Shown here piece after piece: positions 24,241-63,731 of a stretch of DNA of 64,000 nt. Location of the stretch: NCBI GenBank assembly GCA_038496445.1, contig JALMLS010000093.1, positions 861,710 through 925,709 on the forward strand, read 5' to 3'. The stretch's first letter is position 1; each line of letters starts with the position of its first letter. Origin of the DNA: Trichosphaerium sp. ATCC 40318. Taxonomy: Eukaryota > Protista > Tubulinea. Both the position numbers and the translations under genes were made by a program. A model generated the notes under the pieces. That model had not been told where the DNA came from. It saw only the letters and a program-made list of their open reading frames with translations, and searched no databases.

Positions 24241-24470
24241 TTTGCTTTTAAATGGTTTTTTCAAAACCCCTAATTTTTCAAATAAATTTCGAAAAAAAAA
24301 TGACGGTTTTTGTACACGGTTTTCATGTGTCCGATTTTTTCGTTACCATGCGGTTTTTTTGCATGGTAGAACCAAACCCAAACGAGGATTTCGTAACACG
24401 CAGAACGCGTGTGCGTTGTTTTTCATTTGGTTTTGGTTCACACTGTTTTATTTTGCTTTAATTTTCAACA

Positions 24471-25749: not shown

Positions 25750-26265
25750 TCATTTGCCATCTCAACTCAGCAAATGGTGAGGTTATTTGCCATCACAACT
25801 CAGCAAATGGTGAGGCCATTTGTCGTCACAGCTCAGCAAATGGTGAGGTTATTTGCCATCACAACTCAGTAAACAGTGAGGTCATTTGTCGTCACAGCTC
25901 AGCAAATGGTGAGGTCATTTGCCATCACAACTCAGCAAACAGTGAGGTCATTTGCCATCACAACTCAGTAAACAGTGAGGTCATTTGCCGTCACAGCTCA
26001 GCAAATGGTGAGGTCATTTGTTGTCACAGTTCAGCAAATGGTGAGAACATTTGTCGTCACAGCTCAGAAAATGGTGAGGACATTTGTCGTCACAGTTCAG
26101 CAAATGGTGAAAACATTTGTCGTCACAGCTCAGCAAATGGTGAGGTCATTTGTCATCACAACTCAGTAAACAGTGAGGTCATTTGCCGTCACAGCTCAGC
26201 AAATGGTGAGAACATTTGTCGTCACAGCTCAGCAAATGGTGAGAACATTTGTCGTCACAGCTCAA
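25750..26265. repeat. 33-bp tandem array (~15-16 copies), left subterminal region of element A
   Basis: Unit CATTTGCCATCACAACTCAGCAAATGGTGAGGT; the core ATTTGCC/GGCAAAT recurs at the right end (43880-43975). Confidence 0.9.
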
Positions 26266-28799: not shown

Positions 28800-31700
28800 T
28801 TAATTTGGTATGGCATAATGGTGGTAGTTTATCAGCCGTATGCCATCTTCTGGTGTTGTATACATTTGTGCCAATTTGTAAACACTTTTTAGCTCCACAC
28901 ATGCCATTTCATTGGCAGGTTCTATCCTATTAAAACAATGAGAACAGTTTCACATTGGATAAATCCCGTACATAACAAACTCAGTTTCAGCATCATAGCG
29001 GTATTCCAAATTAGAAATGCGATAATAGCTGGTCTATGTTAGTGTATTCTTTGAAATGACAAAAAAAAAAAGAGGACGCACTCTCCAAAAATTAAGACCA
29101 TTTCAGGTCGATGTAAACTACGATATATTCTTTTGGTTGTAATGTAAATACAATTTTTTGGTCTCTTGTTGGTACGTTCTCCAAGTTTTAAACAATGTCT
29201 TCTGATACATTGACAATTTAATTGTCCCATCAGCCGATGTCGCCGAATTGTACATTGTAAACGGGCCATTTTTTATATAATCCACCAACAAAGGAAAGGT
29301 ATGCTCTATTGCAACCTTTTCACTGAGGTTTAAATATCGTCTGTTGCACTTGTTGTTGCCTAACTCCATAATGTAAATGTTGGAAAAAAAAAACATGCCA
29401 AAGTTACTTACGCAAAGTCCATGTCATCTGTGGCCTATAATAAAATGCAGGAGTTATGACACTACAAGCAGGAGTTCGTTGTTTTTTGACAACCACAGTT
29501 TTACACACTTCATCAAACTTGCCAGAATAAGAAATCATCAACCATGGGATTTCTTTACTGGCAATGTCACTAAATTTGTTAAACCAGTTAAGTTATTTTA
29601 TCAATAACAGCGTACACTATTTTATTGTGATTTTTTGAAGAGTGCTTCCAACTCTTAATGGTTGCGTGCTTAGATTCACAGGCATAAGTGCTTAATAGTA
29701 GTAAGTTAAATAAAAAAGTGACAAAAAAAATTGCCTGAAATGTTTAAATACGCCAAACTTCTTGACCATGTACTCATAGTGATAAGGTACATGAAAATTG
29801 ATTGTATCAGTGTTTAAGCCTATTTAATACACCTTTTGTAAATAAAGTATTGGAAATACAGACCGTGCCTGGAAAGTTGTTTTTTATAGCTTTCAATAGA
29901 TTTTTATACATTTCAGTAACTCTACATAAATGCCGTTGCTCCAAATAATCTCTTTGAGTCATCACTATAAATGCCAATAAACTTTTCCTTTAAATCATGA
30001 GCAACAAAAATAACAGCAATCAATAAGAACAAGTATAGTAGTACCACATTGACATCATTTCTTCTGACACCATTCCGCGAAACACTAGCAAAGCCATTTT
30101 TAAAAATGTTCTCATATCCGTGCCATCCCAGCTGTCTTTTACCATGCATCCTTTTTTGTTCCAAACAGCCTTCATCCTAGTAACTTTGTTACAATACTAA
30201 AACAAGAAATAAACTGGTCTCACTTTCCCAAAGATTTGTTTTGTCCTCGAATGTATTTTAATCATTTGTTGATGTTTCTCTTTATTTCCTCTGTTGTATC
30301 TTCTTGCTGTAATTGTTGTAGCGTGTGTATCAAGACTATTTTGGCTATGCCCAAAATGATGTTGTGAAAAGGACAATATGGTGAATGTAAAAAGAAGTCA
30401 AAGCGAAATGGCAACATCAAAGCGAATGGACTCTTAAAAAAATGGCAATGTTAGTCATTTTCCTACTACTACAACAATTACCACTTACTAGTTTTTTTAC
30501 GCCATAGCAGCTTGTGATGTGTTCATTGTAGTTGAATCTATTTAAATCATCAAGTATTTTCCAGGTGTTTCTTTGTTCTCGTTTAACATCAACTGTGTCA
30601 GTTACCATTGTAAAAGAATCTTTTGCAATCCTACAAATTCTACACGGATAGAAACATGTGGGACTTTTCATGGCTAATCAAAATGAGTGAGATAAAAGAT
30701 AAATAGAAAAAAAATAAAGTTGTTCTTACATATCAGTTTATTGGAACCAGGAGAGTCGCCGAATATCATTGTTAATCTCAAAAACACTGTAAAATACTAT
30801 GTACAATAAATATCTACAATATGAACCATTACTTGGTACCTTTTTCTCAGCCGCAATATAACATTTGATTCCAGAATAAATACGCAAAAAATCATCTACA
30901 ACATGCTTCAACAAATCCTCTTCGTGGTGACATTTTGGCAACACAGACAACATCATTTTTCCCGTTGCACTAGCACTATTTGGCATATTTGAAACAACCA
31001 TGTACAATGGTCCAAAACTGTCTTTCTTGTCATAAGTGAAGTCGTCTTTGCTTATGTATGCTTTTGAAAATGACAATAAGTACTACAAAAAATTTATTTA
31101 TTTGTACCTGGAAGCAATATATTGTTTGTTCTATCCTGTTTATACCTTTTTAAAACATCGGCAAATATGGTTTTAATATTAGAACCAGTTTCAGGACCTC
31201 TATAAACTGGATGTGTTGTGGTAGCTCCATTTACAGTAACAGAAACTGTGGGAAGATCGTCAACAATACACTCTGCAATGCTGTCTCTTCCAGGAAGATG
31301 GTAAAGCGCGCGTTTTATGTGGTCTGATGGAGAATAAAAAGGAACCTTGGTGTTGGAGAGCATATCTCCATTATCACTTTTTTTTGAAACTAGGATTTCT
31401 TTTGTCGGTTTAAAAGACAATAAAAACTACATTACTAGTCAGGTTACATGGGTAATAATTCTGTTGCTTGCCTTTTCTTTAACATGTTTGAACAGCGTAT
31501 CTATGCAACATGAAATTATATCTAAAATAAAGGTTAAAAGACGGACAAAAAGCTTCAAATATCAATACCCTGATGTTTCACTCCAAAAAGCATCAATGAG
31601 GTGTTAAACAGCGTCAAAATTTTTTGGCAAAGCACTTTAGAAAGCTTGTGTTCCATTTTTAGAGCTAATAATAGATACCCAAACTTTTCTGCTGGAGTAG

Positions 31701-32263
31701 CAGTTGATAAAGACGCTTTTGGTTTAAAAGCGGGAGGACTTTTGTTCTCATCAAATGCTATACATTGCATTAGTGAATGAAATTTATTTGATATTAACTT
31801 CTTACCGTCGGAGTCATTTAAAGCGTTGTTTGTGAGCCAAGGTTCAAGGATGCCATCTCTAATATCTGCATCATAATTGTCTTCAAAGTCAATGTGGGTG
31901 TAGCTATCGCCACTGCTTATACTGCTAAAATCCGCAATCTGAGTTATCACCGGCTTCGTCGTAACTATCTCCGTCATCTTCAATGTTAAAATGAACTCCT
32001 GACTTTACAATATCATTTAAATGAATGTCTCCATCTAAATCATCATCAATTGGCATGTTTTGGTTTAATAGATCAGACATTTCTTAAAAAGAGATGAATT
32101 TAGCTGTGAATATAGATTTAAAATGACATCTCATACCTCTATTTGCCATTGCGGCCATATGTTTCGAAGTATTAACATGTTGATAATAAAAGTACTGTTG
32201 ATTGTAGTGTTTGTGGCATATATTGCAATAATCTGAGTCAGCCACAGCACTGTTTGAGGCCAT
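28800..32263 (-). CDS. Spliced DDE transposase, CMC/Plavaka-like, N-terminal C2H2 zinc finger (apparent frameshifts at ~31930 and ~29155)
   Basis: CNICHKH...QHVNTSKH; YISKDDFTY (D1); IFGDSPG (D2); YPCRIC; CPFHNIILG; HVPYHYEYMVKKFG; YACESKH (E). Confidence 0.8.
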
Positions 32264-32366: not shown

Positions 32367-35300
32367 TCAAAAAAAGTTAACTTCATCATAAGCAAAGGAA
32401 GAGTAACAAAATTCGTACATTATTTTTTCATTAAAATTTGACAAGTACTCTTCTTTTAATTTTGTGTAACTATCTTCTCTTGCGACAATTGCTCTATCAC
32501 TTTCTTTCATTTGTTTTGCCGTTAATGGAGGAATCAATTTGTGTCTGTTGCAACAAGCACAGTTTGGCAAAGTGGAATTTGAAGTCCAATCAGATCTTTT
32601 CTGGCACCTAAATATAAAGTACGTTTGATTCCCGCTATAACCCCAACCATGAAGGTAAGCTTTCACAATCAAAGCTTTTTCATAATCTATTGCAATAAAG
32701 TTAACTATTGGTTTTAAAAAACGGGCTCATACCTGGTGTTGTCTTTCCTAAAAGTGATAGTGCCAAAAATAAATAAGTTGATCCTGTCCAACTGTCGGTT
32801 GGTTTTTGTTGCAATTGCAAAGACCTGTTGGCCAAGCCTACAACTTTTTTGAGTGTGACATCATCATCAGATCCTTGTATTATGAATATATTGTTGTCAA
32901 TGTACCTACAATTACCATGTCATCAACGAGGGGGCAATTTTAATGCAAGGAAAAAAAAAATAAGAAAAGAAACTCACTCTTTGTTTACTATGACGCTTTT
33001 TGTTATAACCTTCAATCCCGGCTTCAATTTTGAATGTTTACTACCATGCATACATGTGTATATAGTAGAGATGAGCTGAAGTTGTTTAAATCTAGTAAAG
33101 CTTAACTAATTAAAAAGGAAACAAATAAGGCTTTACCCATTTTTATCATATCGCAATATGTCTCCATCGTCCAACATCAAATTGTTATTGTCATCAATTT
33201 CTTTTTTTCGGGCCAAAGACAATATGCAATGCATATTTGCTTGTACTTGTGGCATGTTTAAAGGTACTTTAAGCCTATGATCCCATCTGATTGGTCTAAA
33301 AGGGCTTCTTTTCATAGTTGCCATTAACTTGTGCAATTTAAGCATTTTTGTAGCGACAACATTAGAAAACGGCTAAACACACAACTTAGCTAATCAAAAT
33401 GTGATTGTACTGGTACTGTACCTCATCATTTCTTTCCACGTGTCGTAACACAACTGTAAAATACTGTGTACGGGCTGTAGAGTAAGCAGTTTCAGGACAA
33501 CTCACTGTTACTGTATGAGGTATGCTCATTGGACTTTTAATAACAGCGCCTTCTTCATCTTCTTCTACACCGTGCAAGCCCCATACAAATTGATTTCCAC
33601 TTACATTAATTGTGTCGTCAATGAGAAGCTTTTTTGAATAATGACTTTCATTGTTCAGTGCTATAGCAGCACAGGTAAAGCCGCTTCTTTCATTCATTGC
33701 TCCTCCAGTTCCATCACAGTGTCTTTCTAGCTCAGCATCTTTCTCTGTCCACCCTTTTAAAAGGTCAAATTGACGAATTATTATTACAATATTACCTTCA
33801 GTTCAACATGCAACTTGGAGCAGTCTTTTTTATAATCCAACCCGTTCTTTAAACCACAGGCATAATGAAATGAAATCAAAGGTTCAAGCAATTGTTTGTC
33901 CTCGTCCTCTAAACGGTATGTAGTGTCACAGAAATTATTGCCTTTTGTGACTCCTGAAACTGGAGCAATCCAACCCACACATTTTTCGCCATCTTTTGTT
34001 TCTTCAAAAGAAACTGAAGAGTATGGACTGACATAATATGGAGTGTTGATATGTGTGTCAGTGTATGCTTTCAACTTGCATGTAGATTAGTAATAAGCCA
34101 ACAAAGGAATGTGACAGTCAAAAGGGGAAAAACATACCCTGTATCTTAGTTTTTTGACATGACGTTTAACAAATTGTGTTAATTTGTTGTGAATGGTGCC
34201 ATCATCCAACGCGTTCAATCCACTGAGCTGTGCATAGTACAAATACACACCTATTGGTTTTGTTGGTTCAATAGAATCTTTTTGGTCAGGTAATTTAGTC
34301 GCTCTAACTGCATCACTTGCGTAATTGTAAAATCTTCCTAAACGAGTTGCAACTTTTTCTTCATCAACAAGAGAGCTCTCCAATATTTCTTTGATCTTTT
34401 GTTGGTCTGACAATTCTCGTTGTAATTTTTGGGAGTCTATTATGATCTCGCTTGAAGTCATACCCACTTTAAAGCATCTAATAGCAGCATTTAAAGTTCT
34501 AACTGTAGGTGGCCTTCTTAATTTTGTTCCTCTATGTCCTAACTTTTGTTGTGCCACCTTATGTATAGCCACGGCACATTTATAAACATCAGAAGCTTGT
34601 AAGCTCATTGTTTTGGTAGCCTATGATGAAGTTAGCAGACAACAAAGCTAACACCATTATTTAATAAAGCACCTTTTCCAATGTTTCGTAAAATGACTCA
34701 GCTGTCGGAATTGGCGCATTTGCTCCAGAAGAAGCTCTAAGTATTGTTTTCAATCTTTTGTGTCTATGCTCAAAATGTTAAAAGGTGATAAAATCCATTG
34801 CCGCTTTGTACCTATTGTCTACTTCCAAAGATATGTCTACTTGTTGCAACCAATCCTGTAAATTGTTTTTACTTGGTTTGTATAATTCTTGAGTCACAAC
34901 GTCTGCCAATAATCCATATAACTTCTTTTCTGTTGAAACTATATCAGCTACATATTCTTTTTCTACATAATTCTGTCTTAAATGGTATTGTTAACAAAAT
35001 ATTGAAAGTAGAATTAAGCACCTATTTTTTGTTTTTTGTTTCTTCTTTTTGACATTCTAACAATTGTATTTAGTCGTGTTTTTTGTATAAAACAATTGAA
35101 GTACCATAATAAAAGCCATTTGTACTCCTCTTGTTGGCGGTCGCTTTCTTTTTTTATATTTATACAGAACTTCTCCATCATCTTCTTGGTCAATATCTGA
35201 CATTGATTCATCACTCGATGTGCCACATGATTTGCTCAATTGATCGCCAATAATTCCCTTGTACAAAATTAGCAAGAATGTATTAAAATAGTGTAATGTA

Positions 35301-35802
35301 CAGCTGTTGGTAGATTGCTATCATTGTCACTATCATTATCACTGTCAAAGCTTATGTCATCTGTATTTTCACTTACAGCATCTTTGTCAACGCCGTCTCC
35401 ATTTTCAACGCTGTCTCCGTTTTCTATGCTGTCTCTGTTTTCTATGCTGTCCCCATTTTCAATGCCGTCTCCATTTTCTATGCTGTCTCTGTTTTCTATG
35501 CTGTCTCCGTTTTCTATGCTGTCCCCATTTTCAATGCCGTCTCCATTTTCTATGCTGTCTCCGTTTTCTATGCTGTCCCCATTTTCAATGCCGTCTCCAT
35601 TTTCTACGCTGTCTCCGTTTTCTATGCCGTCTCCATTTTCTATGCTGTCTCTGTTTTCTACGCCATCTCCATTTTCTATGTCGTCTTCAACTTCACCTTC
35701 AATGTTTACTTCAACGATTGCATTATTTACAGCCTGATCTCTTTCATTGGATGGTGGAACTGTTATGAGGACAGTTCTAGATATTTGTCTTCTTTGCTGC
35801 AA
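32367..35802 (-). CDS. 2OG-Fe(II) dioxygenase-like domain fused to an SRA-like domain (element A copy; ends approximate)
   Basis: RHCDG (HxD), FVWGLHG, PHTV (distal H), FTVVLRH; then MHGSK...GLKVI...ANRSLQLQ. Collinear with 53748-56430. Confidence 0.65.
35390..35680 (-). repeat. 18-bp coding tandem repeat (IENGDS/G x ~16)
   Basis: Repeated ATAGAAAACGGAGACAGC-like unit within ORF 35269..35802. Confidence 0.9.
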
Positions 35803-40320: not shown

Positions 40321-41632
40321 ATGATTGTAGCCAACAACAATGCCCCAACTACTAAAGCATCAATTACAGAGGCACCAATTACAAACGCTCAAACCACAAA
40401 TACGTCAACAACTGAAGCTTCAAAGATAGAAGCACCAACCATCAACTGAAGCGCCAACTACATAAGCTCCAACAACTACAACAGCTTTGACAATGGTGGC
40501 TCCAACTACTGAGACACCAAGTATGGAACCACCAACAATAAAAACACCAACTACGCAACTGCTTACAACACTACCAGCAATAAAACCGCCAACCATGGCG
40601 CCAACAATGAAACCACCAGCAATGAAACCACCAACAACGGCACCACCACCAACAACACCACCAACAACGTCACCACCACCAACAACACCACCACCAACAA
40701 CGTCACCACCAACAACAACAACACCACCACCACCAACAACGTCACCACTAACAACAACGTCACCACCAACAACAACGTCACCACCAACAACAACGTCACC
40801 ACCAACAACAACACCACCACCAACAACACCACCAACAACAACAACACCACCAACAACAACACCACCAACAACGTCACCACTAACAACAACGTCACCACCA
40901 ACAACAACGTCACCACCAACAACAACAACACCACCAACAACGTCACCACTAACAACAACGTCACCACCAACAACGTCACCACTAACAACAACGTCACCAC
41001 CACCAACAACACCACCAACAACAACGTCACCACCAACAACAACACCACCAACAATGTCACCACCACCAACAACACCACCAACAACACCACCAACAACAAT
41101 GTCACCACCAACAACAATGTCACCACCAACAACAACAACACCACCAACAACGTCACCACTAACAACAACGTCACCACCAACAATGTCACCACCAACAACA
41201 CCACCACCAACAACGTCACCACCAACAACGTCACCACCACCAACAACACCACCAACAACACCACCAACAACAACGTCACCACTAACAACAACGTCACCAC
41301 TAACAACAACGTCACCACCAACAACGTCACCACCAACAACGTCACCACTAACAACAACGTCACCACTAACAACAACGTCACCACCAACAACAACACCACC
41401 AACAACACCACCAACAACAACGTCACCACCAACAACAACACCACCAACAACAACACCAACAACACAGCCACCAACTACTGCTCCACTTACAACAACACCG
41501 CCAACAATGAAGCTGCCAACCATGGCACCACCAACCATGACACCACCTACAATGACTTCACCTACAAACCACAACATGTTACAAAACGCACAACAAATAG
41601 TTTTCTACAGATTTTTCCATTTTTGTTTTTAG
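40321..41632 (+). pseudogene. Thr/Pro mucin-like low-complexity exon of a decayed cargo gene in element A
   Basis: ~850 nt built from ACA/CCA/ACG-TCA codons (TTSPP repeats); frameshift and in-frame TAA upstream at ~40440-40470. Confidence 0.6.
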
Positions 41633-43767: not shown

Positions 43768-44079
43768 AACAACTTTACAATAAACACTTTTTATAATTAT
43801 GTTTACTGAAATGAATCAAAGGCTGTCGGAGTTTATTAGGTACTCCGTAATAATCGTATTGTCATAAATGATACTTTTCCGGCAAATACTGGTTTTAGAT
43901 AATTGCCGGAAAGTTACCATTTGATGTTACAGTACAAAATGGTATTTGCCATCAAAGTTTACTTTTGTGGCAAATATTGTGTTTTGACAGCAATTTCCAT
44001 ACTTATTTTTACCCCTGTTTTTTTTTTTTTTGATTATTTTTTGATTTTTTCCCCTAAAGTATTCATAACACATTTTTCA

Positions 44080-46000
44080 TGTGTCGAACGTGCGACCGCG
44101 AGCTCGCGGTCGTGTACAAACACTTAAATATCCTGTTGTAAAATCGTCAGTTTTTAGTGGTTTTTTTTTTTTTGTTTTTTTTTAAATTAATTTGTTTCTG
44201 TAGGAGAGATTTCCATTTGTTGAAGGAGTAGACCAACTGCAGAAGTTTATCAAAGACGTCAGAAAAATCTACTCTTCGGACGAAGAAAAGTGGTGGAAGC
44301 CAATGCACTTTGAAGGCAACTACACCAGAGATTACAAAAAGCACAAACCCATGCTGAGAGAACACGGAGATGAGGAATCGAAGGTAGAGGAGAAGGAGAG
44401 AAATGGATGGATTATAAGCTGCAAGTGGAGACAGTTGTATTGGCAGGTGCTACTCTGGACTGGCATATTTTACACAGCCATGGAACTTCATGTCACAGAT
44501 TCTTGGTACTACATTGCCCTTCTTTTGGTCCATTTTAGAGATTTCTTGAGCTTTGGCAATGATTCAGATTTCCATCTCTTTGTGGAGTAAGTAACAATTT
44601 TCGCGATATTTTTTTAACACACATTCAACGTGTTCGAAAACAAATGACATTCATTTTTTGTTTTTTTTTTTTTTGTTTTTTTTTTTTTTATTTTTAACTT
44701 TTATGTAGCTACATGAAGACAGGCACCAATAAATTGAATGGCTGCATCATAAAGCCATCAATACAAAAGGGCCTGCTAAGAGGGATTGCTGCCAACTCTA
44801 TCAACAAGAAGTATCTGAGAGTGAAGAAGCCCTCATTTTACAAAGGCCCCTTGGACATGTCACACATAGCTTGTTTTTTGAATGTCAGAGGAGTCAACCC
44901 CAGGAACATTATACAAAAGATGCCTATTTATGAAACCTTCACCAAAAGGTTTGTGCTTTGCCCTATGCCTATTGTTTGGTGTGATGAATACAATACAGAC
45001 CCTATTGTTGGCTTTGGAGTTGGAGATGGAGCACACTGTCTTTTGACAGAGTTGGCGTACGTTCGCGAATATTTTCGAACACGTATTTTACGTGTCGGTC
45101 GACCGACCGCGAGCTCACGGTCACGTTCGAACACGAGATTTTCCTGTCGTAAAAAAACCTCGAACAACGAACCTTTTTTTTGTTTTTCTGGTTTTTTACT
45201 TTTCCTTACCTTATTGTTCAATTGTTTCTTACTTGTTTGCCTTAGACAAAATGCAGCTAAAACCTGCAAATTTGCAATCAAAAATGTGGAGTGGATAAAT
45301 CCTTTCGCCAAGATGCAAGCGATAGCGATCTACTGCACCAAGATCAACTTTCTGCAAAGTCTGACCACTCCAGACTCCAAGGTGGATCGCTACCGCCACC
45401 TGTTCAAGATGTGGTGCGACGACGCGGGCCAGGTCTTCGATTACCAAGCGGAGGCGGGAGATATAGGTAAGGTGAATTTTGCGATATGGGGAGCCAGCAG
45501 AGTCAAACCTCAGCTCAGTCCTGCTCAATGGAAAGAGGTGAGGGTTGTTTTTTTTTTTTATTTTAATCTTTTTTTTTTTATTTTAATCTTTTTTTTTTTA
45601 TTTTAATCTTTTTTTTTTTTTTCGCAAGTATTTTTAAACAGAGGTTCCGCGTGTCGTAGATCGTACCGCGAGCTCGCAGTCGCGTACGAACACTAAAATA
45701 CTCTGTTATAAAACCGACGATTTTTAGTTTGTATTTTTTTTTTATTTGTATGTTATAACTGATTGTTTTGTTTAGTTTTTGGTTAAGATGAATCTATACT
45801 TTCCATATGTGACCAACTGGAAAGAAAGCAAACAGTTTGTTAAGGCTGGCATGTTTTTTGAGCCATTGGACAGTGCTCTGATAGCAGAATTGGTTGCATC
45901 TGCTGAAAATGTGGTACGTAGGCTTTCGTCTTTATTCGAACACGCATTTCACGTGTCGAAGTACAGACCGCGAGCTCGCGGTCGGATTCGAACACGCATT
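44080..46000. repeat. Intronic palindrome modules CGTGT(T)CG-N5/7-GACCGCGAGCTCGCGGTC-N5/7-CG(A)ACAC
   Basis: Cores at 44094 (perfect), 45105, 45664 and 45966 (perfect), one in each of four introns. Confidence 0.9.
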
Positions 46001-47159
46001 TTGTGTGTCGTACAAAGTTTCGGTCGTTCACTCACACTCTCATCATAGCACACCAAACATCCAGTGGGCTACAGAACTAGAATATTGGCTCATGCTGCAT
46101 GGGCAGAGTTACCTCTCCATGCCAGAATAGCAGTAAGTCAAGTACCTTTTATATTTTTTTTTGAAAAAAGGGTTTGTGCCTAACTTGTACATTTAGTTTG
46201 TCAAGGCACTGACCTGCAGGGTGTATCATGAGACCAATCAATCTTATTATTTGCAGAGGTACAAGAACTGCAGCCAATATATCACACAGGTACAAAAAAA
46301 AAAAAAACCAATCGGTCAGTTTTTTTTTGTTGTTTTTTTTTGTTGTTTTTTTTTTTTTCTTCTCCCTCCACCCTCATCTAACTTTAACTCGAGGCCTTGA
46401 GACAGCTGAACGAGCTCGGTTGGTACGAGCTCTCGTGGGACACGAGCACCGAGGAGGAGCACGTGAATTTCGCGAACAGCCTGCGTCCGTGTATATTTCG
46501 CCAGCTTCTGATGTACGACCTGCACTTGCTTTGGACCGGCACCACAGAAGATGGCCAAAAATTGCCCAAGATGGTTATAAAAGAGATGAAGTACAAGCAA
46601 GCAGCAACGGTGCTCTCCTTCTCTCACACTGCCCTGTTGTCTATGCAGTGTTTGGATTTGCCTGAGGTGGAGGAAGCAAGTAAGTGTCATTTTTTTTTTT
46701 TTTACACTACACATCCAATGTCGCGCTCGGCGCTACACGCGAATCGCCTGTTCGTCGAACGTGGCGGTCGTACTCTTTTCTTTTTCTTTTTTTTTTTTTC
46801 TCTCCCCTAGTTTACTTTTAAACTAATGTCCTTTGTAGCTCCTCAGTTAGAAGCCATGTTGGAGAATGCCTACTTACCTTTTAGAGATACAAGGGCCAAG
46901 AACACTGCCAATGCAAGGGCAAGTGAAGGCAGTGCCATAAACAGGCATAAAAAAAAAGGTAAAGGCAAAGGCAAGAAAAAGAAGCCTATGGTTAAAACAA
47001 CTCCTCCTACATCAGATGAAGAAGAAGATTTTGAAGAAAAAGAAGATGAGGATGAGGATGCAGTAGTAAAATCAAATCGGTATTTTTGAAGGATTCCGTG
47101 TTAAATTCCAAAGGATTTATAAGCGGAAAATCTCTTCCTTTATTCCTATGGAATCCCAA

Positions 47160-47400
47160 TGAAATTCCGTAAGGATTTGGAGCGGTATTCCGTAAGGATT
47201 TAGAGCGGTATTCCGTAAGGATTTAGAGCGGTATTCCGTAAGGATTTAGAGCGGTATTCCGTAAGGATTTAGAGCGGAATTCCGCAAGGATTTAGAGCGG
47301 TATTCCGTAAGGATTTAAAACGGAATTCCTTAAGGATTTAGAGTGGAATTCCATAAGGATTTACAGTGGTATTCCGTAAGGATTTAAAGCAGGATTCCAA
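47160..47400. repeat. 23-bp tandem array (~10 copies), left subterminal region of element B
   Basis: Unit GCGGTATTCCGTAAGGATTTAGA; related inverted motifs (TAAATCCTAAGGAAT, AAAATCCGTA) at 61870-62030. Confidence 0.9.
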
Positions 47401-51605: not shown

Positions 51606-52682
51606 TTACTTGGTCAAATCTATTACTTCTTTTTTAATCTTATATTTGCCAGTTTTCATCTTTAAGATAAAAAGATCGGTACAATTGAATTTTACTTTGC
51701 GTCCTTTGATGTACCTATAACCCGATTCAAAAGTGTTGGTTTCATCATAGTTACGCGTGTGTCCATGAAGGTATCCATTCTTATAATTTCGTACAGTTTG
51801 TCTGCTACCGTTTTCACGAAAGCGTTTGAAGACCACCATTGCACCGTTCTTGTATTCACATACCTTACGTACATTTCCGCATGGATAATATGCAGTCAGT
51901 TTTCCGTGTTTTACTCCTTGATGGAACGGTATAATGCGAACTATTTGGTTGTTCTCGTAAAAACGAGCTTGGCCGTGTTTCTTACCATTGACAACGGGTA
52001 CTGAAGCAAACAAGTTACCTTGACTATACAAACGTTGTAATCCATCAACATGTCCACCAAAAAAGATACGAGTTCTAGTCTTGTTTCCGTTCTTGTCGTA
52101 GTCTGTAGATTCTCCATGTTTTACTCCAAGAGAGTACTGCTGGTCAAGTGCAACACTTCCGTCTTGAAAGTAATGCACATCTTTACCGTGTTTCATACCC
52201 TTTTTATAGTCCGTCTTTGATTTGATAGTGCCATTACGAAAATACTTGATAAGTTCAGATTCCAGAGAACCGAATTCTATTTTGCATTTGCTTATCAGCT
52301 CGCCAGAATTGTGATATTGCTTAAATTCACCGTGATACACTCCATAATAATAATTTCCGTGTGTGTATGTGTCGTCTTTTATGAATACGGCAGGTCCATG
52401 TGGTGATCCTCGACGATAACTACGCTTACCACAAATAGGCTTGTTCCAATTTTGTGTCCAAGTTCCTATCGGTTCCAAATCCTCATTAAAACGCATTAAT
52501 GCCAAATATTTGCATACTAGAGGCATTAACACATACGCTTCATAGGCAAATGAACAAATGAAGGCAATCTCCTTCAAGGAAAAGTCTAACAACGACTATC
52601 GTTTGTTAGTGTTGGAAAAAACTAAATTCCGTACGTGACAGAGTTGACTTGGCGTAGTTTGTAGGCGCTTTTGATTTTGCAT
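51606..52682 (-). CDS. MORN-variant (YwqK-like) repeat protein with degenerate F-box-like N-terminus
   Basis: Repeats YxxGxKHGxxxxYxxxG; N-terminal LLDFSLKEIAFICSF...LMPLVCKYL; one short 5' intron, then a ~990-nt exon. Confidence 0.8.
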
Positions 52683-53747: not shown

Positions 53748-56430
53748 ATGAGCGTAGAAACACCCAACAAGAAACGGTACGTCAACAAAGCACAAGTTTG
53801 ATTGTAACTTTATTAATAGCAAACGTTCAACTGTCAGTTCTCACACCAGCTCTCTTAAAGTAAAATTTCATCAACCTGCAGCTGTACTAATGCGTGTGCT
53901 TGGTTTAACACTCATTGTTTTCTTTAGCCATCAACGTATGCAACTGAAGCTCAAATTGAAGACTTAACGAAACAGCTACAAGTAGCTTGCAAGTCTGTGG
54001 CAAGTGTTTGTGCCACAGTATCAAGCATTAGCAATTTTCCGTTGTCTGGTAAAGGTTGGATCCTTACCAAAAAACACATCAAACAAACATCTAACAACGA
54101 AGACGTGAGAACAATATTAGCCACAGAGACTCCAAATTGTCTTTTATCCAGCAATTATATTTCAGCAATTAAAAAGGTACGCTTACATCATCTTTTTTTG
54201 TTTGTATTAACCACAATTGCATAGGCTGAAAGCCAAAGTACTTTCACAGTACTACAAATTCACAATGAGGCAATGTACATGGCAACAAAGGCTACGCAAC
54301 CTGGACAAACGATATCACTGGTTCCAAGATTAGCACATTGCGCGATCGTCTCGTTGAAACAAAATGGATCTGTTATTCCTACACAAGAAGACGAAATGCG
54401 AATGATCGACAGCGCTCGAACAAGCTCGAGAAATAATATCATTGTTAAGTTAGATGTGAATGTACCCATGAAAGGTTTCATCACAAGGCAAAAAATAACA
54501 GGACAACGCCACAAATTAACAGCAGGTGCAAGAAACAGCATATATTTGTATCATGTGCCGAATGAAGATAATGTGCAAAGTATACTTGGCTGTTGTAAGC
54601 AATTTGCAATGAAAAACTCGCATCTCTTAAGACATAAGGTACATACGATAGTTTAATCGTATTGTTTACTTGATTTAGATAATAGCAATAGACAGTAAAT
54701 CTGCGTTTACTGCGTATAAAATTAAAAAACAAAGAAGCTGGTTTTTCAACTCATCATGGATTGTTCCGTTTACTGGTAAAATGGCTGGCAACAGACACAT
54801 GTTCAATTGGTCAAAGACTGATGCGCAGGACAATATTCTTTTACAGCCTTTGATCGATTTGCACATGACGATGAGCAAAAATGCAAATAGTCGCGATTTT
54901 AATGAACAGGGAACTCTTTGCATCAGCTTAAAAGTAAGCAAACGTTCAAACAGTTAACTCGTAACATTATACTAGGAATACATTCCAGGTTGCACAGGAA
55001 TTCCCTTTCATGTTGACGGTGGCATAAACAGCCACGTAAATGAAACTAATGGCATCACTTGTTTTGGGTTTACATTGCGAGATTCTATCGACTGTAATTT
55101 AAAAACAATAGAGGTTGAAGGTAAACTGCAAGTAGTTGTTCATCACAGTTAATTGTATCATTAGGAAGCCACAAAACTCACATTTTAACAGGCAATAACT
55201 TTATATGGGCATTGCATGGTAGTTGTGCTAATGGCAAAGGCGCTGGAGGAGTAAGACACAAACTAGACATAACTGAGTTGCAACACAAACAAAGTGTCTG
55301 GACCATAGTATTACGACGCATGATTTTACACACAGGAAAGGTTTGTGCTAGAATCCAATGTTTACAACTTTTTTCACATCACTTTAGATTGATGACGCAA
55401 TAGACAACAAAATTGCTTTTATAAACCAACTGAGCGCTTCTTTGAAACAATATCCAAATTTAAAGCCGTTGAGCCATAAGTTGGAGCTAAATACCTCATC
55501 AATTCGATACCAGGCAAACAAACATCTTTTGTTAAATGTGTTGGAGCTTCAGGCAACCCAAGGTTTACCAAAAGATGGATTATTTTGTTTACATGAAGGA
55601 GATTTACTCATGTCTGACTGTCACGCCTTGTATGCTTTGGGCTTGTACAATAATCCATACTGGGCTTTGCATGGAAATAAGAATGTTGGTTTGAAGGTTA
55701 TCATCAAGCCTGGGATGTATAACAATGAGTACTTTTATTCTTCTTTTACAGTAGCTTGTTGATTGTTGTTTTAGAATTGTACACAAAAATTGGATGTTAG
55801 TTCGTTTAAGTGACCACAAAACACACTACAATAGACAAGTGGATTACATCAAAAAATCTATTGAATTACAAGCTAAGCACCCTACTGACAGATTTAAAGG
55901 CAAAACGTACACCATTTTACCTTTAAATGCAACCAACGCAGATGTTGAAATACAAAAAAAATATCAATGTGAATTTCCAAATTGTACGTCAGTCCGATAC
56001 TCAATTTGCTAAACACATATTTGTGCAGGTTCAAAAGCAATTGGGCATGTGCAAGAGTGGTATGTGCATGGCATTGTGTACAATTACCAAGAGCGCATTG
56101 CTGTCTTTAGAAGAGAGCGCAGACAAAAAATGGCTTTGTTGGAACCTTTTGAAATAGTCGAAAAAGATAAAACTGACAGCTTCACTTTAGTAGACACCAG
56201 CTTGACATGTGAATGTTGTTTATACAAACCCAAATTTATTACCACCTTTATGTTCGAACCTACACAAGCACCTGTCGATGTAGATCATGAAGCAAACACT
56301 GCAGCATTTAATAGTGCGGTCAACAATTCAACGGTACTTGTTTTGATCCATATACATTGATTTTCAGCTTAAATTCTGTTTGTAGACTCTTGCAAAGTTT
56401 CCATTTAACATGCACAGCTCACGTGTATGA
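53748..56430 (+). CDS. 2OG-Fe(II) dioxygenase-like (AlkB-like) domain fused to an SRA/YDG-like domain (element B copy, core apparently intact)
   Basis: LKEYIPGCTGIPFHVD (AlkB-like xYxPGxGIxxHxD; HxD at 55009-55017); FIWALHG; VRHKL; WTIVLRR; then GLYNNPYWALHGNKNVGLKVIIKPGMYNNE (55640-55729). Confidence 0.7.
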
Positions 56431-56525
56431 GCAGCCTCATAATTGTTAGTTACAAGTCAATAAAAATGGCACAGAAATACGACGACTTTAAATAAATAAA
56501 GATATTTTTTCACTTGCAACTCTAA

Positions 56526-59500
56526 ATGAATCAAAGGTATACTTGCGTGGCTTGTAATACCTGTTTATGGCGAAGCAATCGTGCAAGACATGAACAAACA
56601 AGTTTACACAAAAGCAACTTATTACTGCGAACAATATCAAATAATGCATTACGTACTAGATCAGAACCTAATGGCCACAATTACGACACAATTAACTTAT
56701 TGCGTACTTGTTTTGTCAAAACTCCCTGAAACTAACTTATTTAGCTTCTTTGGGCGTAGAAACAACAAATTTGCAGGACAATGTTACAAATTGGGTTGAA
56801 AATACGCCATCTTTTATCCATCATCCAAACCATCCCGAAACAATGCTCAGCCAGTCAATTATCTCCAAAACTACTCATGACAACAACCTTACAGAAAATG
56901 ATCAACGCGTTGAAAATCAAAATGTAAACTTATGTGAACGTACAGCTGTTAGAATACAACAAATGGAGTTTGTTACAACTTTGCAATCGAGCATTCCGAC
57001 GATAGAAAATGCTTCAGCAACTGACCAATTTTTGTACTTGGTACGAAAACTGCAACTAGAACAACAATTGCCAGATGAAAATGTCAAGCTATGGTTGAAC
57101 TTTTTCAAAACAGCTGAAACGATCTTCAATCAACAAACCAGATCTTTCGATGCGACAACTTCTCAATCGCCGCTTTCTTTTTTCGAAAACAAATTGAGTG
57201 TTGCTTCCAGTAAAAAAACTTTTCAAAAGGTACAACCAATCACACTTGTTCATTGTATTGTTAACATCACTTCAGTACACCCCAAAACTCAACATGCAAA
57301 CCATACGCATCAAAACTACAAATAACTCATTTATGGAAATTCCGTTCATTCCTCCATCTGAATATGTGAGATTGCTCATGTATCATTTGGAAGATAGAGA
57401 CAGCATAAATGACAACTCTAAATATCCACACAAGGTGGATAGAGCTGATGTAAATGGCGATATCACCAATGTGCAAATATTCGAAGGCCCAGAAACATCA
57501 CAACGATACCACGATATGTATCTTGATGTAGAAAAAACAAAACAAAACATAAGGCTTGCAGGTGCTGTTCAGCTTTGACGTTCCTTCTGTTATAACTTTA
57601 AAGTTTAGCTTATGTCTGCCATGATGATTTTACATACGATAAAAAGGATAGTTTTGGTCCTATGTATCTGGTTATTTGGAACATGCCAAACAGCGAAGAA
57701 ATGCAAGGGAAAATGACTTTGTTTGTGTTACCCACCAATGTAGTGATGGCAAATGCAATGAAGTATGTTGTAGATGACATTGCAATGATGTATGATGGCA
57801 TTGAACTTCATAGCCCCAAATTGAAACGTGTACGAACACTTTTATTTCATTGTTGTTCTTTACTCTAATTGTTACAGACTTTCAAAGTGTACTTAAGATT
57901 GGAAAAAATACTAGGAGACATGCCAGGAACATGCAAGGTTCTTTGTACGTTAAATTAATTACAAATACTATGCTAAGTTGATAGCTATAAAAAACCATGG
58001 TTCCAACCTTCCGTGCCGCGTTTGTGACATATCTAAAAATGGTTTAAAAAACCTGCAAAATAATTACAAAAAACGAACAAAGGATCAAGCAATCATTGTG
58101 TACAATAACCATAATATGTCCAACACCAACAAGCTATATTCTTTGTGTTTTAATGCCTTTGTACGTAATTACAGCTTTACAAACTCTTTGACACTGTTTG
58201 TAGTCACCGTTTTTGTTTCTACCCAATTTTGACATTTTCCAACATTCTCCTTTTTGTCCCTTCCACAATATTCTATTGGGTATTTCAAAACAGGTATTAA
58301 TAGGCACACTTGAAATGCTTCAAGAAAAGCATTCAAGGGCTGTGCAAAAACAAATTAATGCCAATATCGAATGGTATAAAAAGCAAAAGCACGTTTCTAT
58401 CAACAAGTACACGTTTGTTTACATGAATTTATCATTAACATTGATTTTAGAATGAAAGCAGTATGGGATAAACAAGGAGACTTGTGTTTGGTTCAACATG
58501 GTTGGGATGGAGCTGATACAAGATCTTTTTTGCAAATGGCATTGTTTGTGTTCAGGTCGTTCAGGTCTAAAATTTTCGAGCTGTTTTTATGGTAGATACC
58601 ATGGATTTGTGGTATAATTATACCATTGATTACAATTTTATACCACAAATTCCAGTATAATATACCATAAATCAAAGGATTTATACCATAAAACAGCCAA
58701 ATTATACCATAAATATGCAGTAGAAAGTGCGAATTTATACCATATTTTTTCACCTGAAAAAATGCAATATATGGTATAATTCTACCATAAAACACGGTAT
58801 AAAACACAGTATAATACCACAAAGTCTGGTATATTATACCTTAAAACTTGGTAGATTATACCACAAAACCAGGTGTATTATACCGTGTAAAAACTGTTCT
58901 AATAATAAAACCACATTTATTAATACATTTTTTTGTTTACATCCGTGACCTTTGGTTTTGTCCATATCCTCTTTTGTGGTAGTTGACACATCAAATAACC
59001 TTCAAAAAAAATATTGTACTTGCTGTAAGTGCATCGAATGGACATAGCATGAAAACTAGAAGAAGAATTAGTGAAGGCTTGATGCACAAAATAAATAGTT
59101 GTACAAAAATTGCTGTTTTGTTGTGGTGGCAGCACTGGGAGTAACAAATGACCTGTGTGGTGGAGCCAAATCAAGACTAAAACAAAGAAATGAAAATAAC
59201 TGCCAACTTCATCGGAAACAAGTTCTAGCAGAATCGTACCTGTTAGTTAACACATCTTGGTTTTTTTTTTATCATCTATCTAGCTTGGTTAAAACCTATG
59301 GCAAGCGGCTTCAAAACAACTACTTTTAGCGTACCTTGTGTTGTGTGGGCGATAAACTGGACAAGACTTAGTTTTGTGCTCTGACTTAGCCAATTGGTTT
59401 ACAATATCACTCGTAAGGTCAACGCATGGGTGTGAAGCCTAAATGCTATCTGTTCTGGCAAATGCGGGCGTTTAGTAGGGAAAAATTCAAAAAAATCCAA

Positions 59501-61807
59501 AAAAATCCAAAAAAAACCAAAAAACTCAAAAAATGGGTAGGCTCTGAAACAACTTGGCCTTATAGCACTATTCACGCGTTTTAACATGCATTGGAGCGTA
59601 TATCAAAAATGTCAAAAAAAAATAAATAATTTTGCTCCTGATTTGGTAAATGAGGCTGTATGGCGTTGATTGAATGTAAAAATGCCTATGGAGGGGAGAA
59701 AAAAATGAGAGCGGGGAAAAAAACCTCCAATTGGAGGTTTTTTGCGAATGGGCATTTTTCAAGCGCTAAACGCGTTTTTGGTGTGTCTACCACTGTAGCG
59801 TTCTAACATGGGGTACGTGGAGTGGTTTCTTTCTCAAATACTGTCAATCGGAGAAAATTGGCCAATTTATCCCTAAAACGCCCGCAATTGGGGCACGTTA
59901 CCAGATTTCTCTCTTAAAACTGTTTTTCACACATTTATATGCCAATTATGTTCAATAACGGCTACTGTCAAAGCATTGTGTGGTATGGCGTTTGCGTAGG
60001 GCCAAAGGCTATTAAATCAAGTATAGACCAAGTGAGCTTTGACTAACTTATACTTATACGGTATAATACCACGGTATAATACCACATTTTATGGTATAAT
60101 TATATGGTATAATGCACGGTATACTATACTTTAAAATACAGTATAATACCATGGTATAATACTGTGTTTTATGGTATAATTATATGGTATAATGCATGGT
60201 ATAATATACTTTAAAATGCAGTATAATACCATGGTATAGTACCATGTTTTATGGTATAATTATATGGTATAATGCATGGTATAATGTACTGTAAAATGTG
60301 GTATAATACCATGGTATAGTACCATGTTTTATGGTATAATTATATTCTATAAATTGAAATATGGTATAAACATGGTATAATGGCTGTTATACCATTTGTC
60401 CAAAAAACATGGTATTATACCATATTTTATGGTATAATTATATGGTATAATTATGGATTATACTGAGCTTGTACCATAAAAGGTGATTATACCATAAAAT
60501 ACGGTATAATACCATGATAATTTTCAGACCTGTTGTGTTCGAAAGCAGTAATGCAAACATGGTACATCACAAAAAAAAAAAAATCCAATATTCATCACTT
60601 TAGGTGCGCTTTATTGAGTTATATTGCCCTCATGTCTAGAAGTTTTCTACAAGAATACAAATTACATTTGGTCACTCATGCAGCCCTCAGTTTAAGAAAT
60701 TTGGTAGCAATTAACTTACCAAGTAAGTCTTGAAACTTATTTAATTGTATTGACAATATTTTGAAAGATGTAAATGTCACAACTCCTAACTTTCACGTTA
60801 TTGTACATCATGAAGATTTTATACGGATGTTTGGCATGCCAAAACATTATAGGCACAAAACAATACATTTATGTGCTTTTTAACACCTTTATTAGCACGT
60901 ACAGTTGTGAATCTAAACATAGGAAAATAAAAAATTGGAAACGAAGCACCAAAGGCTGCAAAAAAATACGGTACATATACCTTTTCGACTGTTAACACGA
61001 GTTTTTGTAACACATTTTAGAGATATAATGGCAAGAGAAAGTGATTCTATTTCTTCCTATTTTGCTGGGACGTTTAGTAAAACAATGAATAAATTGTCTA
61101 GCAACGAGCAATGTGAAATCGACAAACTCTCCAACTTTTGTTATTTGGCCAAACGCCTTCTCAACATACCTGAAGCTAAATGGACTCTTCGTACTGAATC
61201 ATTTACAAGTACACTGCATTGATTGTACTTTTAGATAATAGACAGTTGATTCGGTTTGCATTTTTGTCTCAAAAATTCAAAACAGCATTAAACAATGACA
61301 CAAACGAACGTGGCATTGAAGACACTTTACAAATTGCAATGTATAACTCTGCCAAATGCGCTCAAAGAGAATTAGCTATTTGTGCTTCTAAAAATACTTG
61401 TTTTAAAACTTGGAGACCGCACAAGTTCGAAACAAGAAGTGATTGCATTTACATTGAAACAACGGCCATTGTACAATTGCACTCTCAAGGAGAAGTTTAC
61501 GTATTTGGCAGGTAGCAAAAAAACCCTTTAAATTGATTTGTGATCGGATACTAATTCGAATTCAGATTGTTTACGATAAAAGATGTTGCAAATAGATATG
61601 ATGAAATTACAGAACTGGTAACGTGCGTACACAATTGTCACATTGATTCATTTATTGAATGCGTTTAGAATCATTCACAATGAAGATGAACCATGCGCTT
61701 GTGTCCCATTATCCATGATATATAGAGTTGAATGCATCATTCCACATCCTGATGCTGAATCGAACATTTACTTGGTGAATTACTACCAAAGAACCATTCC
61801 CAAATAA
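56526..61807 (+). pseudogene. Spliced CMC/Plavaka-like DDE transposase with C2H2 finger, interrupted by element C
   Basis: CVACNTC...RHEQTSLH; YVCHDDFTYDKKDSFGP; LGDMPG; LPCRVC; CPFHNILLG; HVIVHHEDFIRMFG; YSCESKH. Paralog of 28800-32263. Confidence 0.85.
58562..60532. mobile_element. Element C: 1971-bp non-autonomous CAG-terminated element
   Basis: TIR CAGGTCT(G)AAAATT; TSD TT (58560-61, 60533-34); GGTATAAT/ATTATACC subterminal motifs (80-bp period at ~60088-60340). Removal restores FRSLCSKAVMQTW. Confidence 0.92.
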
Positions 61808-62399
61808 ACATTCGTACTTATATATATTTGGTGAAACTTGTCGTAATTTATTATGCTTTTGGAAATAAACAGTAAATCCTAAGGAATCCCAAGAATTATC
61901 GGATTATTGTTGGAATCCTGTGTAAAATCCAATGACAAATAAAAACACTTTACGGATTTTTATCTAAATTCCATTAAAATCCTGAAAAAAACAGGAATTT
62001 GACTGGATTCCAATTAAAAATCCGTATTTTATTTTACTACTGTGAGGTTGAAGATGAGGTTTCAGAAGAAATCCAGCTGCAAAAAAGACCAAGAAGAAGC
62101 AGCAGAGCACATGGGTTGTTCAAAAAATCAAGTGAGCCTTGGTTTGAAAGTGTAGTAACTCACAGACCGATCGTACTCGGTACGAACACGATCGCGATGT
62201 GTTGGTTTGTTTTTTTTTTTCCCTTTCTCTTTTTTTTTTTTCATAAACCAATGTACCAGTTGATGTTATTTAGATTCTGATAAACCACAGCCTTCTACAT
62301 CAAAACATGATGTAAATAAAAGGTCAGGACCAACAAAGATGACCACAAGAAGCAGTCAAAGACTAAAACGAGGTACGTTAACTGCGAACACATATTTTC

Positions 62400-62906
62400 C
62401 GTGTTCGCATTAGACCGCGAGCTCGCGGTCGGTTTCCGACACGCGTTTTACCTGTTGAAAAATAGCTCGGAGGGTTTTTTTTGTTTGTTTTTGTTTTTGA
62501 CATAACTCAGTACTCATGTTGTTCTTACTTAGCACTTGCACCATCCAACAATGGTGAATCTTCTTCTGAGAAGCCTGCTGCCTCTTCCTCTCAATATGGC
62601 TCTCAATCCACCCAACCTCTAACTCCAAGAACCAAGAGGAGAAGAAGTTTGGCTTTGAGAAAGGGGTTGTTGCAAAAATTTTACAAGGCAAAGACTGAAG
62701 AGATGCTCCAATTGTTGTCTATGCCTACTTTGATTAAAAAAGTGGATGGAAGATTGCACCTCACCTTGGTTATTGATCCTGAATCAAAGTCTGGTGACAC
62801 CTTGATTAAAGGCAAGTTTTATATTAATTTTTCCTCGCCGAATTTTTTAACACACGTTTTCCGTGTTCGAACGTGACCGCGAGCTCGCGGTCGGTCGCCG
62901 ACACGT
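62400..62906. repeat. Two further intronic palindrome modules
   Basis: Perfect GACCGCGAGCTCGCGGTC at 62413-62430 and 62875-62892, each flanked by CGTGTTCG ... CGACACG. Confidence 0.9.
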
Positions 62907-63731
62907 ACTTTTCCTGTTGAAAAATAGCATTTTTTATGCGAACTTCACATGACTTACTTGGAGGTTTTTTTGTAGCTGGTAAAATAGATTTGACCCAGTT
63001 GAGTGAAGATGATGAAGAGAGCAAAGAAGAGGAGGAGGAAGATAATAAGAAAGGTAAAGAAGAAAGTGATGATGATGAAGATGAAGAAGAAGAAGAAGGA
63101 GAAGAAAAAATCATAACTGAACAACTGGTAGAAAAACTGATTTGCCACCAAGAAAACAAAGAAGAGGCAGAAGAGTGCTGAAAACTCCAGGTAAAATACC
63201 AACTAGATCTTCTGGTGCAAAAAAAAGAAAGAGAAACAGCATTGGCAAAGCAGGAAGGGCCAACAAGAAAAACAAGACAGGTAAAAAGCCTGTTGAAAAC
63301 GAAGACGAGGATGACGAAGGAGAAGAACAACTCAGTGAAGAAATTTTTGAGTAAACACATTGTGTAATCTTACCTTAATAAAGATAGTTTTAATGTAGTT
63401 TAAAAAAACAACTTTGTGGGTTTTTTTTTTTTTTTTTTTCAATAAAAACACATGTTTAATGTGTCTTAATATTGAAAAAAATGTTGCTCTGAAAAAAAAA
63501 AAAAAAAAAAAGAGCTATTATTCAGCCTCTTTGTACAATAAAAAAGACTTGTTGTTTGAGTGTACATATATATTTATTATTTATTTATTTATTTTTTTTA
63601 TGTGTGGTTATAGATATATATAAAATTTCAAGTGCAATATAATGAGATTTTAGGGTAAAAGGTTGGTGTAGGTTAGAAGGTAAGGTTTGGAAGATGGGTG
63701 GGGGTTGAGGCAAAGGTTGGGTGCAAGTTAG

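Follow-up and report, generated by a model that had tools for sequence, protein, structure and literature searches.

Two anciently diverged copies, A and B, of a two-gene unit belonging to a short-intron eukaryote were found in a 64,000-nucleotide stretch of contig JALMLS010000093.1 of Trichosphaerium sp. ATCC 40318 (forward-strand positions 861,710 to 925,709), which is referred to below as the window and from whose first letter all coordinates are counted. In each copy a multi-exon open reading frame (ORF), ORF1, lies directly upstream of a transposase-like gene, ORF2. ORF1 is most likely a very divergent 2-oxoglutarate (2OG)/Fe(II) oxygenase-like accessory protein, unproven as such and analogous to the TET/JBP genes of fungal transposons. 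The best explanation of the unit as a whole, a CMCT-type transposon accompanied by this oxygenase-like protein, is held with a confidence that falls just short of even. Copy A occupies the minus strand at ~28.8-34.6 kb and copy B the plus strand, 20 kb away and in the opposite orientation; coordinate 53748 is the start of a possible first exon of copy B ORF1, a candidate only, and coordinate 61807 is the stop of copy B ORF2. When all copy B open frames were compared with the rest of the window by tblastn, a colinear chain of matches was obtained through both copy A genes and nowhere else. No nucleotide-level similarity was found between the copies, and they are for that reason regarded as old, separate lineages rather than recent duplicates. 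The ORF1 stop precedes the ATG of ORF2, which is on the same strand, by 103 nt in copy A (32367 and 32263) and by 165 nt in copy B (56360 and 56526), in agreement with an earlier reading of this DNA made from sequence only, which had placed the same protein about 100 bp upstream of the transposase-like gene in both elements. That reading had also called the transposons giant, a description that did not hold, the gene pair of A extending over ~5.8 kb and that of B, nested insertion counted in, over 7.6 kb, with element ends not found.

The ORF1 gene models were built on GT-AG junctions, with each copy guiding the model of the other. In copy A the introns measured 45-72 nt, the spliced frame was open from end to end and the donors were strong (AGG/GTATGT, AAG/GTAATA, GAG/GTACAG, TGG/GTAAAG, AGA/GTGAGT and CAG/GTATGA), and in copy B the introns measured 40-71 nt. 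The frame was intact through six introns in each copy; five intron positions were common to both, a sixth was present in B only and a seventh in A only. The spliced proteins shared 26% identity over 574 aligned residues, with a Smith-Waterman score of 350 where shuffled controls averaged 40.5 (z = 54.6), and the central region alone, at 28% identity, reached z = 21. The peptide blocks listed in the sequence-only reading, ten of at least five residues together with PHTV and RHKL, were all recovered at their places by exact search. The introns of all window gene models and of the single metagenome relative described below were uniformly very short (39-72 nt), often with TAG acceptors. The DNA is eukaryotic in character (G+C of the window 36-42%), its host genes appear as open frames split by short gaps and include a long coiled-coil gene and a Pumilio-family gene, and no tRNA or Rfam match was found in the window. 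The short introns, and the fact that three different genes have hardly any relatives in databases, point to a poorly sampled eukaryotic lineage.

Relatives of ORF1 were found to be extremely rare. The queries used against Pfam, PDB and the large collections, as well as those given to AlphaFold2, were single uninterrupted exons and not the full spliced domain, so that their power was low, and with only three ORF1 homologues (A, B and the relative described next) every profile was shallow. The window's own ORFs were absent from the protein collection by exact look-up. A search of 1.84 billion representative proteins, with a profile covering the putative catalytic region in its C-terminal half, returned five matches, four of which were long bacterial repeat proteins with 6-9 weak stretches each and were taken as false positives. 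The fifth, P0005, was an 82-residue ORF on L001, a 992-bp JGI metagenome contig on which an ORF1 homologue is encoded over its last ~240 residues (Smith-Waterman z of 47 with A and of 23.5 with B). L001 has four intron positions in common with A and/or B, and the copy B intron at 55121-55191 is identical in position and phase to an L001 intron. No further relative of ORF1 or ORF2 was found in word-based protein searches or in scans of metagenome, viral and GTDB prokaryotic contigs, where one metagenome alignment was too divergent for use, and a word-based search seeded with the best-conserved transposase exon gave zero candidates. ORF1 is thus effectively an orphan, with the P0005/L001 fragment as its only detected relative.

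The case for a dioxygenase comes from residues that were kept through this divergence. H258-x-D260 (copy A numbering) is present in A and B, L001 being without this part, and the three sequences, 26-40% identical, all retain H307, H326 and R350; in the central region four of eight histidines are kept, against an overall identity of 28%. The HxD...H iron-binding triad is thus present as conserved sequence positions (H258, D260 and H326), and the claim of the sequence-only reading that the triad and the last arginine survive strong divergence was borne out at ~26% identity. The distances from HxD to the histidine (63-68 residues) and from the histidine to the arginine (19-24 residues) are compatible with what a jelly-roll oxygenase would allow. 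The order common to the three sequences is G-N-x-F-x-W-x-L-H-G, G-A, the invariant histidine in H-(K/T)-(V/L), a basic residue and a hydrophobic strand ending in the invariant arginine; the basic residue lies 8-10 residues before R350 and is R342 in A and lysine in B and L001. In the AlkB family, the strand-loop that leads into the triad reads N-x-Y-x-P-G-x-G-I-x-x-H-x-D. In copy B the residues LK and, read across a 42-nt intron, EYIPGCTGIPFHVDG give an AlkB-like YxPGxxGIPxHxD; the string LK-EYIPGCTGIPFHVDG appears to be a close match to that of the AlkB family, with seven fixed positions. When the AlkB strand-loop region was compared between copy B (LKEYIPGCTGIPFHVDG) and copy A (LKKDAELERHCDG), copy A was found to keep only the HxD (KKDAELERHCDG), with KKDAELERHCD in place of the YxPGxxGIPxHxD string. 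Of the AlkB-type signature named in the sequence-only reading, HxD...H was borne out in A and B, and the longer string in copy B but not in copy A. The family as a whole (PF13532; E. coli AlkB, ALKBH1-8 and FTO) is matched by ORF1 in HxD...H, in the terminal arginine on the last strand and in a G-x-x-x-x-W hairpin before the distal histidine, the G-N-x-F-x-W-x-L-H-G of ORF1 resembling the G-D-V-V-V-W-G-G of AlkB. ORF1 differs from it in showing no significant sequence or profile similarity, in lacking the first arginine of RxxxxxR and, in copy A, in lacking the N-x-Y/PG string. The local motifs look more like AlkB than like TET/JBP.

A precedent for such a partnership exists. In fungi, TET/JBP genes are carried by Kyakuja, Dileera, Zisupton, hAT, Harbinger, IS3EU, EnSpm, ESTA, Plavaka and Helitron elements (Kojima 2025, PMC12730594); the association with Kyakuja-Dileera-Zisupton (KDZ) and Plavaka transposons named in the sequence-only reading is real and extends to EnSpm. 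The transposon TET/JBP proteins of the 'PE type' gave HHpred E-values of 1.4-19 and were recognised only via structure (PMC12730594), which shows that such enzymes can escape sequence methods and makes a dioxygenase reading of ORF1 plausible, if unproven. Both systems combine a cut-and-paste transposon, CMCT members included, with a second gene proposed as a nucleic-acid 2OG/Fe(II) dioxygenase, and each includes such genes that have diverged beyond the reach of sequence methods. ORF1 differs in having no TET/JBP Pfam match, in its AlkB-leaning motifs and in a large additional C-terminal domain, and its host differs in its ~45-nt introns and in belonging to a lineage barely represented in databases. 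The central ~200 residues of ORF1 would be a very divergent member of the nucleic-acid-modifying 2OG/Fe(II) oxygenases with a double-stranded beta-helix fold, in which H258, D260 and H326 would be the iron ligands and R342 (lysine in B and L001), together with R350 on the last strand, would hold 2OG. The transposon might then, speculatively, apply this enzyme to its own DNA or RNA, oxidising or removing a methyl mark, as has been proposed for fungal TET/JBP. The fold is slightly favoured on the motif evidence, and the proposed activity is rated lower.

Copies A and B of ORF2 gave colinear tblastn blocks at 32-59% identity, and the order of blocks is the same in both: a C2H2 finger, DDFTYDKKDSFGP(L/M)Y, a second aspartate block (FGDSPG in A and VTDFQS in B), PCR(I/V)C, CPFHNI(I/L)LGI, NFHV..H and CESKH. 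ORF2 is a zinc-finger and DDE-type protein, and the contexts of its blocks recall the TnpD blocks of plant CACTA elements. With the published CMCT transposase definition (PMC12730594), the motif order was found in both copies, a result at motif level, and the 'CMC-like' label of the sequence-only reading, or CACTA/EnSpm-like, appears reasonable. Like CACTA/EnSpm elements (TnpA and TnpD), the unit encodes a DDE transposase bearing the C(2)C and H(3)H motifs and, on the same strand, a further protein of low conservation, and has many introns; unlike them, ORF1 is a separate upstream gene and not an alternative splice product, and CACTA termini and subterminal repeats were not found. Copy B ORF2 is interrupted within an intron by a nested insertion, at the position of which copy A has a short intron only.

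The results that speak against a transposon-borne dioxygenase are wide-ranging, though each test had little power. In Pfam, hmmscan with each ORF1 exon (E <= 10) found neither a 2OG family, PF13532 included, nor TET/JBP (PF12851), and PHROGs gave no match to any ORF1 exon. Single-sequence and profile searches of PDB chains with ORF1 exons (phmmer and hmmsearch) returned no oxygenase, a PDB search with the 48-residue core exon of copy B had no match, and the solved TET/JBP structures showed no PDB sequence match to ORF1. Likewise, the profile search of 1.84 billion proteins contained no dioxygenase, be it AlkB, TET/JBP or another oxygenase. Two AlkB profiles were prepared, one from 120 enterobacterial sequences (a search seeded with E. 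coli AlkB) and one from 14 plasmid-borne sequences of proteobacteria, actinobacteria and cyanobacteria, from which L009 (wrong frame) and L014 (broken gene) were left out. In hhalign, the spliced three-sequence ORF1 alignment reached probabilities of 0.1-0.3% against these profiles (0.13-0.22% for the 14-sequence profile, with a shallow query alignment), and the best register left the proposed catalytic residues unpaired. That register, itself non-significant, placed the AlkB core on the C-terminal domain of ORF1, which was rejected as the catalytic domain because neither HxD nor arginine is found there. An AlphaFold2 model of copy A exon 3, which contains HxD...H...R, built from a four-row alignment, had a predicted local distance difference test (pLDDT) score of 35.9, and its Foldseek output was meaningless. 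Within the motifs themselves, the loss of the YxPGxxGI string in copy A counts on the same side, as does the RxxxxxR of AlkB, of which only the second arginine (R350) is kept, the first position being Y, V or Y, as the sequence-only reading had cautioned. The dioxygenase assignment of that reading stood at the level of motifs, while the profile, PDB and fold searches, all of low power, were without match. For ORF2, Pfam gave no match on 20 exon-sized pieces, transposase families such as Transposase_21, DUF4218 and Plavaka included, and around A and B neither CA..TG ends nor 2-5 bp target-site duplications were seen, nor any convincing terminal inverted repeats, there being one copy per family in the window and the ends not mappable.

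The CpG content of the elements is a further, weaker point on that side. The CpG observed/expected ratio was 0.75 for the whole window, 0.50-0.59 for copy A and 0.70-0.82 for copy B, with TpG/CpA raised, and was ~1.0-1.1 in some stretches (10-20 kb and 51.6-54.2 kb). Mosaic CpG methylation of a genome would leave this pattern, which suggests that the host methylates CpG and that units A and B were not spared the resulting decay. The depletion inside the elements, strongest in A, is unlike the result of complete protection from 5-methylcytosine (5mC), and as an argument against an efficient self-protecting 5mC eraser it is weak, the sample being small.

The foremost alternative, though rather unlikely, is that ORF1 is a non-enzymatic accessory protein, such as a TnpA-like end-binding or transpososome-assembly factor of the kind known from En/Spm, whose HxD...H...R is a chance resemblance among residues of the sort kept in any conserved protein. 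A second protein of low conservation is a classical feature of CACTA-type elements, which counts in its favour, as do the emptiness of every dioxygenase profile, structure-database and fold test and the occurrence of the most AlkB-like string in only one of the two copies. Nevertheless, the AlkB match of copy B is long, with its seven fixed positions, the invariant histidine and arginine stand at fold-typical distances among alternating hydrophobic residues, and Pfam detected no DNA-binding domain in ORF1 either.

An improbable second alternative is that units A and B belong to the host, as an anciently duplicated pair of genes for a domesticated transposase and a partner protein. Both ORF1 genes have stayed intact at 26% identity, introns are numerous, and neither terminal repeats, target-site duplications nor nucleotide similarity between the copies were found, all of which would suit host genes. 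The richness in introns loses weight since CACTA elements are often intron-rich (PMC4158355). Furthermore, the two copies, 20 kb apart and oppositely oriented, share their surroundings with dispersed short repeats and a Mutator-like transposase, a 1.9-kb insertion is nested in copy B, the family is patchy, one relative having been found among 1.84 billion representative proteins, and both units are CpG-depleted like the other repeats.

The C-terminal part of ORF1 was the subject of a more specific claim, namely that it is an SRA domain fused to the dioxygenase. A 47-49-nt intron follows the central region and is itself followed by a second conserved region of ~200 residues, the first 113 of which form one exon in copy B. 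A, B and L001 all keep H389, N403, H405, D433, H451 and C574-x-C576 unchanged, a pattern of histidine, asparagine, aspartate and cysteine that hints at a metal-binding or catalytic site; the possibility that the C-terminal DH...N-x-H marks a His-Me/HNH nuclease was rejected, having no profile support and an atypical spacing. No SAD_SRA (PF02182) or other Pfam match at E <= 10 was obtained with the exons of copy A or with the 113-124-residue exon (55388-55759) that spans this region uninterrupted in copy B, and a three-species profile of the domain had no match in PDB. For the copy B exon, AlphaFold2 gave a low-confidence model (pLDDT 58.8, predicted template modelling score 0.40) that opens with a long helix, followed by a strand, two helices and a strand, a mixed alpha/beta arrangement unlike an SRA barrel, and Foldseek returned nothing below E = 5 for it. 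The AlphaFold and Foldseek check that had been suggested beforehand, run on single exons, thus gave low-confidence models (pLDDT 36 and 59) with no Foldseek match, and neither shows nor refutes a dioxygenase. SRA domains carry the strings GDxLxYTGxGG and PVRVxR. The only likeness of ORF1 to the SRA/SAD (YDG) domain is a loose YD(K)xG ... GxKV in two of the three sequences, A and L001, copy B having MSDCHA at the place of YD(K)xG. The domain is therefore not regarded as an SRA domain, no test that was run supporting it, and the fusion proposed in the sequence-only reading was not supported. A 2OG-Fe(II) dioxygenase-SRA fusion acting as a self-encoded eraser of 5mC or N6-methyladenine is accordingly very improbable, for although it shares the motif evidence of the dioxygenase reading, and A and L001 have D/E-G-x-x-L-x-Y-D-K-x-G and then G-x-K-V-x-T-K, the domain tests above and the CpG ratios of 0.50-0.82 in the elements speak against it.

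If ORF1 is indeed a dioxygenase, a self-carried demodification enzyme would not be a peculiarity of fungal TET/JBP elements and would have been reached repeatedly by cut-and-paste transposons with different scaffolds, offering a new handle on the escape of transposons from methylation-based silencing; this would be a variation on a known transposon strategy and no new category. It is possible, albeit rather unlikely, that ORF1 founds an unrecognised divergent dioxygenase clade joined to a second, possibly metal-binding domain, and represents an independent capture of an AlkB-like gene by CMCT transposons in a possibly non-fungal lineage; in a literature text search on AlkB and transposons, AlkB was unmentioned among the matches listed. 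Even as a non-enzyme, an intact, conserved ORF1 of more than 600 residues that is almost free of relatives would mark both the gene and its host lineage as under-explored.

Table 1. Coordinates of the two-gene units in the window.
Feature	Copy	Strand	Coordinates	Description
ORF1	A	-	32367..34608	637 aa, 7 exons; ATG at 34608, stop at 32367
ORF1 exons	A	-	34608-34138, 34074-33796, 33742-33422, 33372-33137, 33091-32978, 32905-32733, 32686-32367	Stop included
ORF1 WIAPVSG	A	-	33952-33972	ORF1
ORF1 LLEPLISFH	A	-	33865-33891	ORF1
ORF1 exon 3	A	-	33422..33742	Proposed catalytic core
RHCDG (HxD)	A	-	33710-33724	In exon 3
FVWGLHG	A	-	33569-33589	In exon 3
PHTV	A	-	33509-33520	In exon 3
FTVVLRH	A	-	33440-33460	In exon 3
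ORF1 second conserved domain	A	-	33372-32540	Residues 358-580
ORF2	A	-	28800..32263	At least 15 exons; splice junctions plausible for most exon pairs, model provisional
C2H2 zinc finger	A	-	32159-32227	ORF2
First D block DDFTYDKKDSFGPLY	A	-	31002-31046	ORF2
Second D block FGDSPGS	A	-	30743-30763	ORF2
C(2)C PCRIC	A	-	30633-30647	ORF2
CPFHNIILGI	A	-	30346-30375	ORF2
H(3)H NFHVPYH	A	-	29779-29799	ORF2
E block CESKH	A	-	29666-29680	ORF2
ORF1	B	+	54225..56360	At least 614 aa, 7 exons, stop included
ORF1 exons	B	+	54225-54638, 54679-54933, 54976-55120, 55192-55340, 55388-55728, 55775-55983, 56029-56360	
ORF1 possible extra 5' exons	B	+	53748-53795, 53928-54176	Candidates
ORF1 WIVPFTG	B	+	54757-54777	ORF1
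ORF1 LLQPLIDLH	B	+	54838-54864	ORF1
ORF1 core	B	+	54976..55340	One intron inside
EYIPGCTGIPFHVDG	B	+	54976-55020	AlkB-like string and HxD
FHVDG	B	+	55006-55020	ORF1 core
FIWALHG	B	+	55200-55220	ORF1 core
RHKLD	B	+	55254-55268	ORF1 core; RHKL at 55254-55265
WTIVLRR	B	+	55299-55319	ORF1 core
ORF1 second conserved domain	B	+	55388-56200	Residues 358-580 (copy A numbering)
ORF2	B	+	56526..61807	Stop 61805-61807
Zinc finger	B	+	56544-56609	ORF2
DDFTYDKKDSFGPMY	B	+	57623-57667	ORF2
VTDFQS	B	+	57871-57888	ORF2
PCRVC	B	+	58011-58025	ORF2
CPFHNILLGI	B	+	58255-58284	ORF2
NFHVIVH	B	+	60788-60808	ORF2
CESKH	B	+	60906-60920	ORF2
Nested insertion in ORF2 intron	B		58600..60520	~1.9 kb; 80-bp tandem array at 60056-60352; many inverted GGTATAAT-rich repeats

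Several other features were observed around the two units. Upstream of copy A ORF1 by 0.7 kb and on the same strand, an ORF at 35269-35802 (-) encodes an acidic six-residue IENGDS-like repeat, corresponding to a tandem array at 35395-35680 (18-bp period, 16 copies), and could be a further gene or exon of element A. An intact, intron-less ORF of 677 aa at 36657-38690 (+), 2 kb upstream of copy A ORF1 and on the opposite strand, combines a Mutator-like transposase (PF20700, E = 2e-27) with an F-box (PF00646); only two relatives, with 27-28% identity, were found among 5.8 billion protein clusters, and one of them is also Mutator and F-box-like. About 1.6 kb upstream of the copy B ORF1 exon at 54225, an intron-less ORF of 328 aa (51606-52592, -) contains variants of the MORN_2 repeat (Pfam E = 4e-13). 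A dispersed repeat of ~80-140 bp, resembling a miniature inverted-repeat transposable element, a short interspersed element or a satellite and having the palindromic core GACCGCGAGCTCGCGGTC, was located at 24468-24980, 44018-44177, 45070-45199, 45590-45747, 45935-46016, 62385-62501 and 62843-62936; it is arrayed in tandem at 24.5-25.0 kb and present as single units at the other places, some of them 0.6-1.1 kb downstream of copy B ORF2. Other tandem arrays comprised a 33-bp unit at 25749-26264 (15.6 copies), open as a repeat ORF rich in Ser, Ala, Asn, Gly and Glu, a 23-bp unit at 47164-47398 (10 copies) and a long imperfect array at 40420-41632 with periods of 12-33 bp and a GC skew of -0.53, which is open in several frames, one of them Thr/Pro/Ser-rich and mucin-like.

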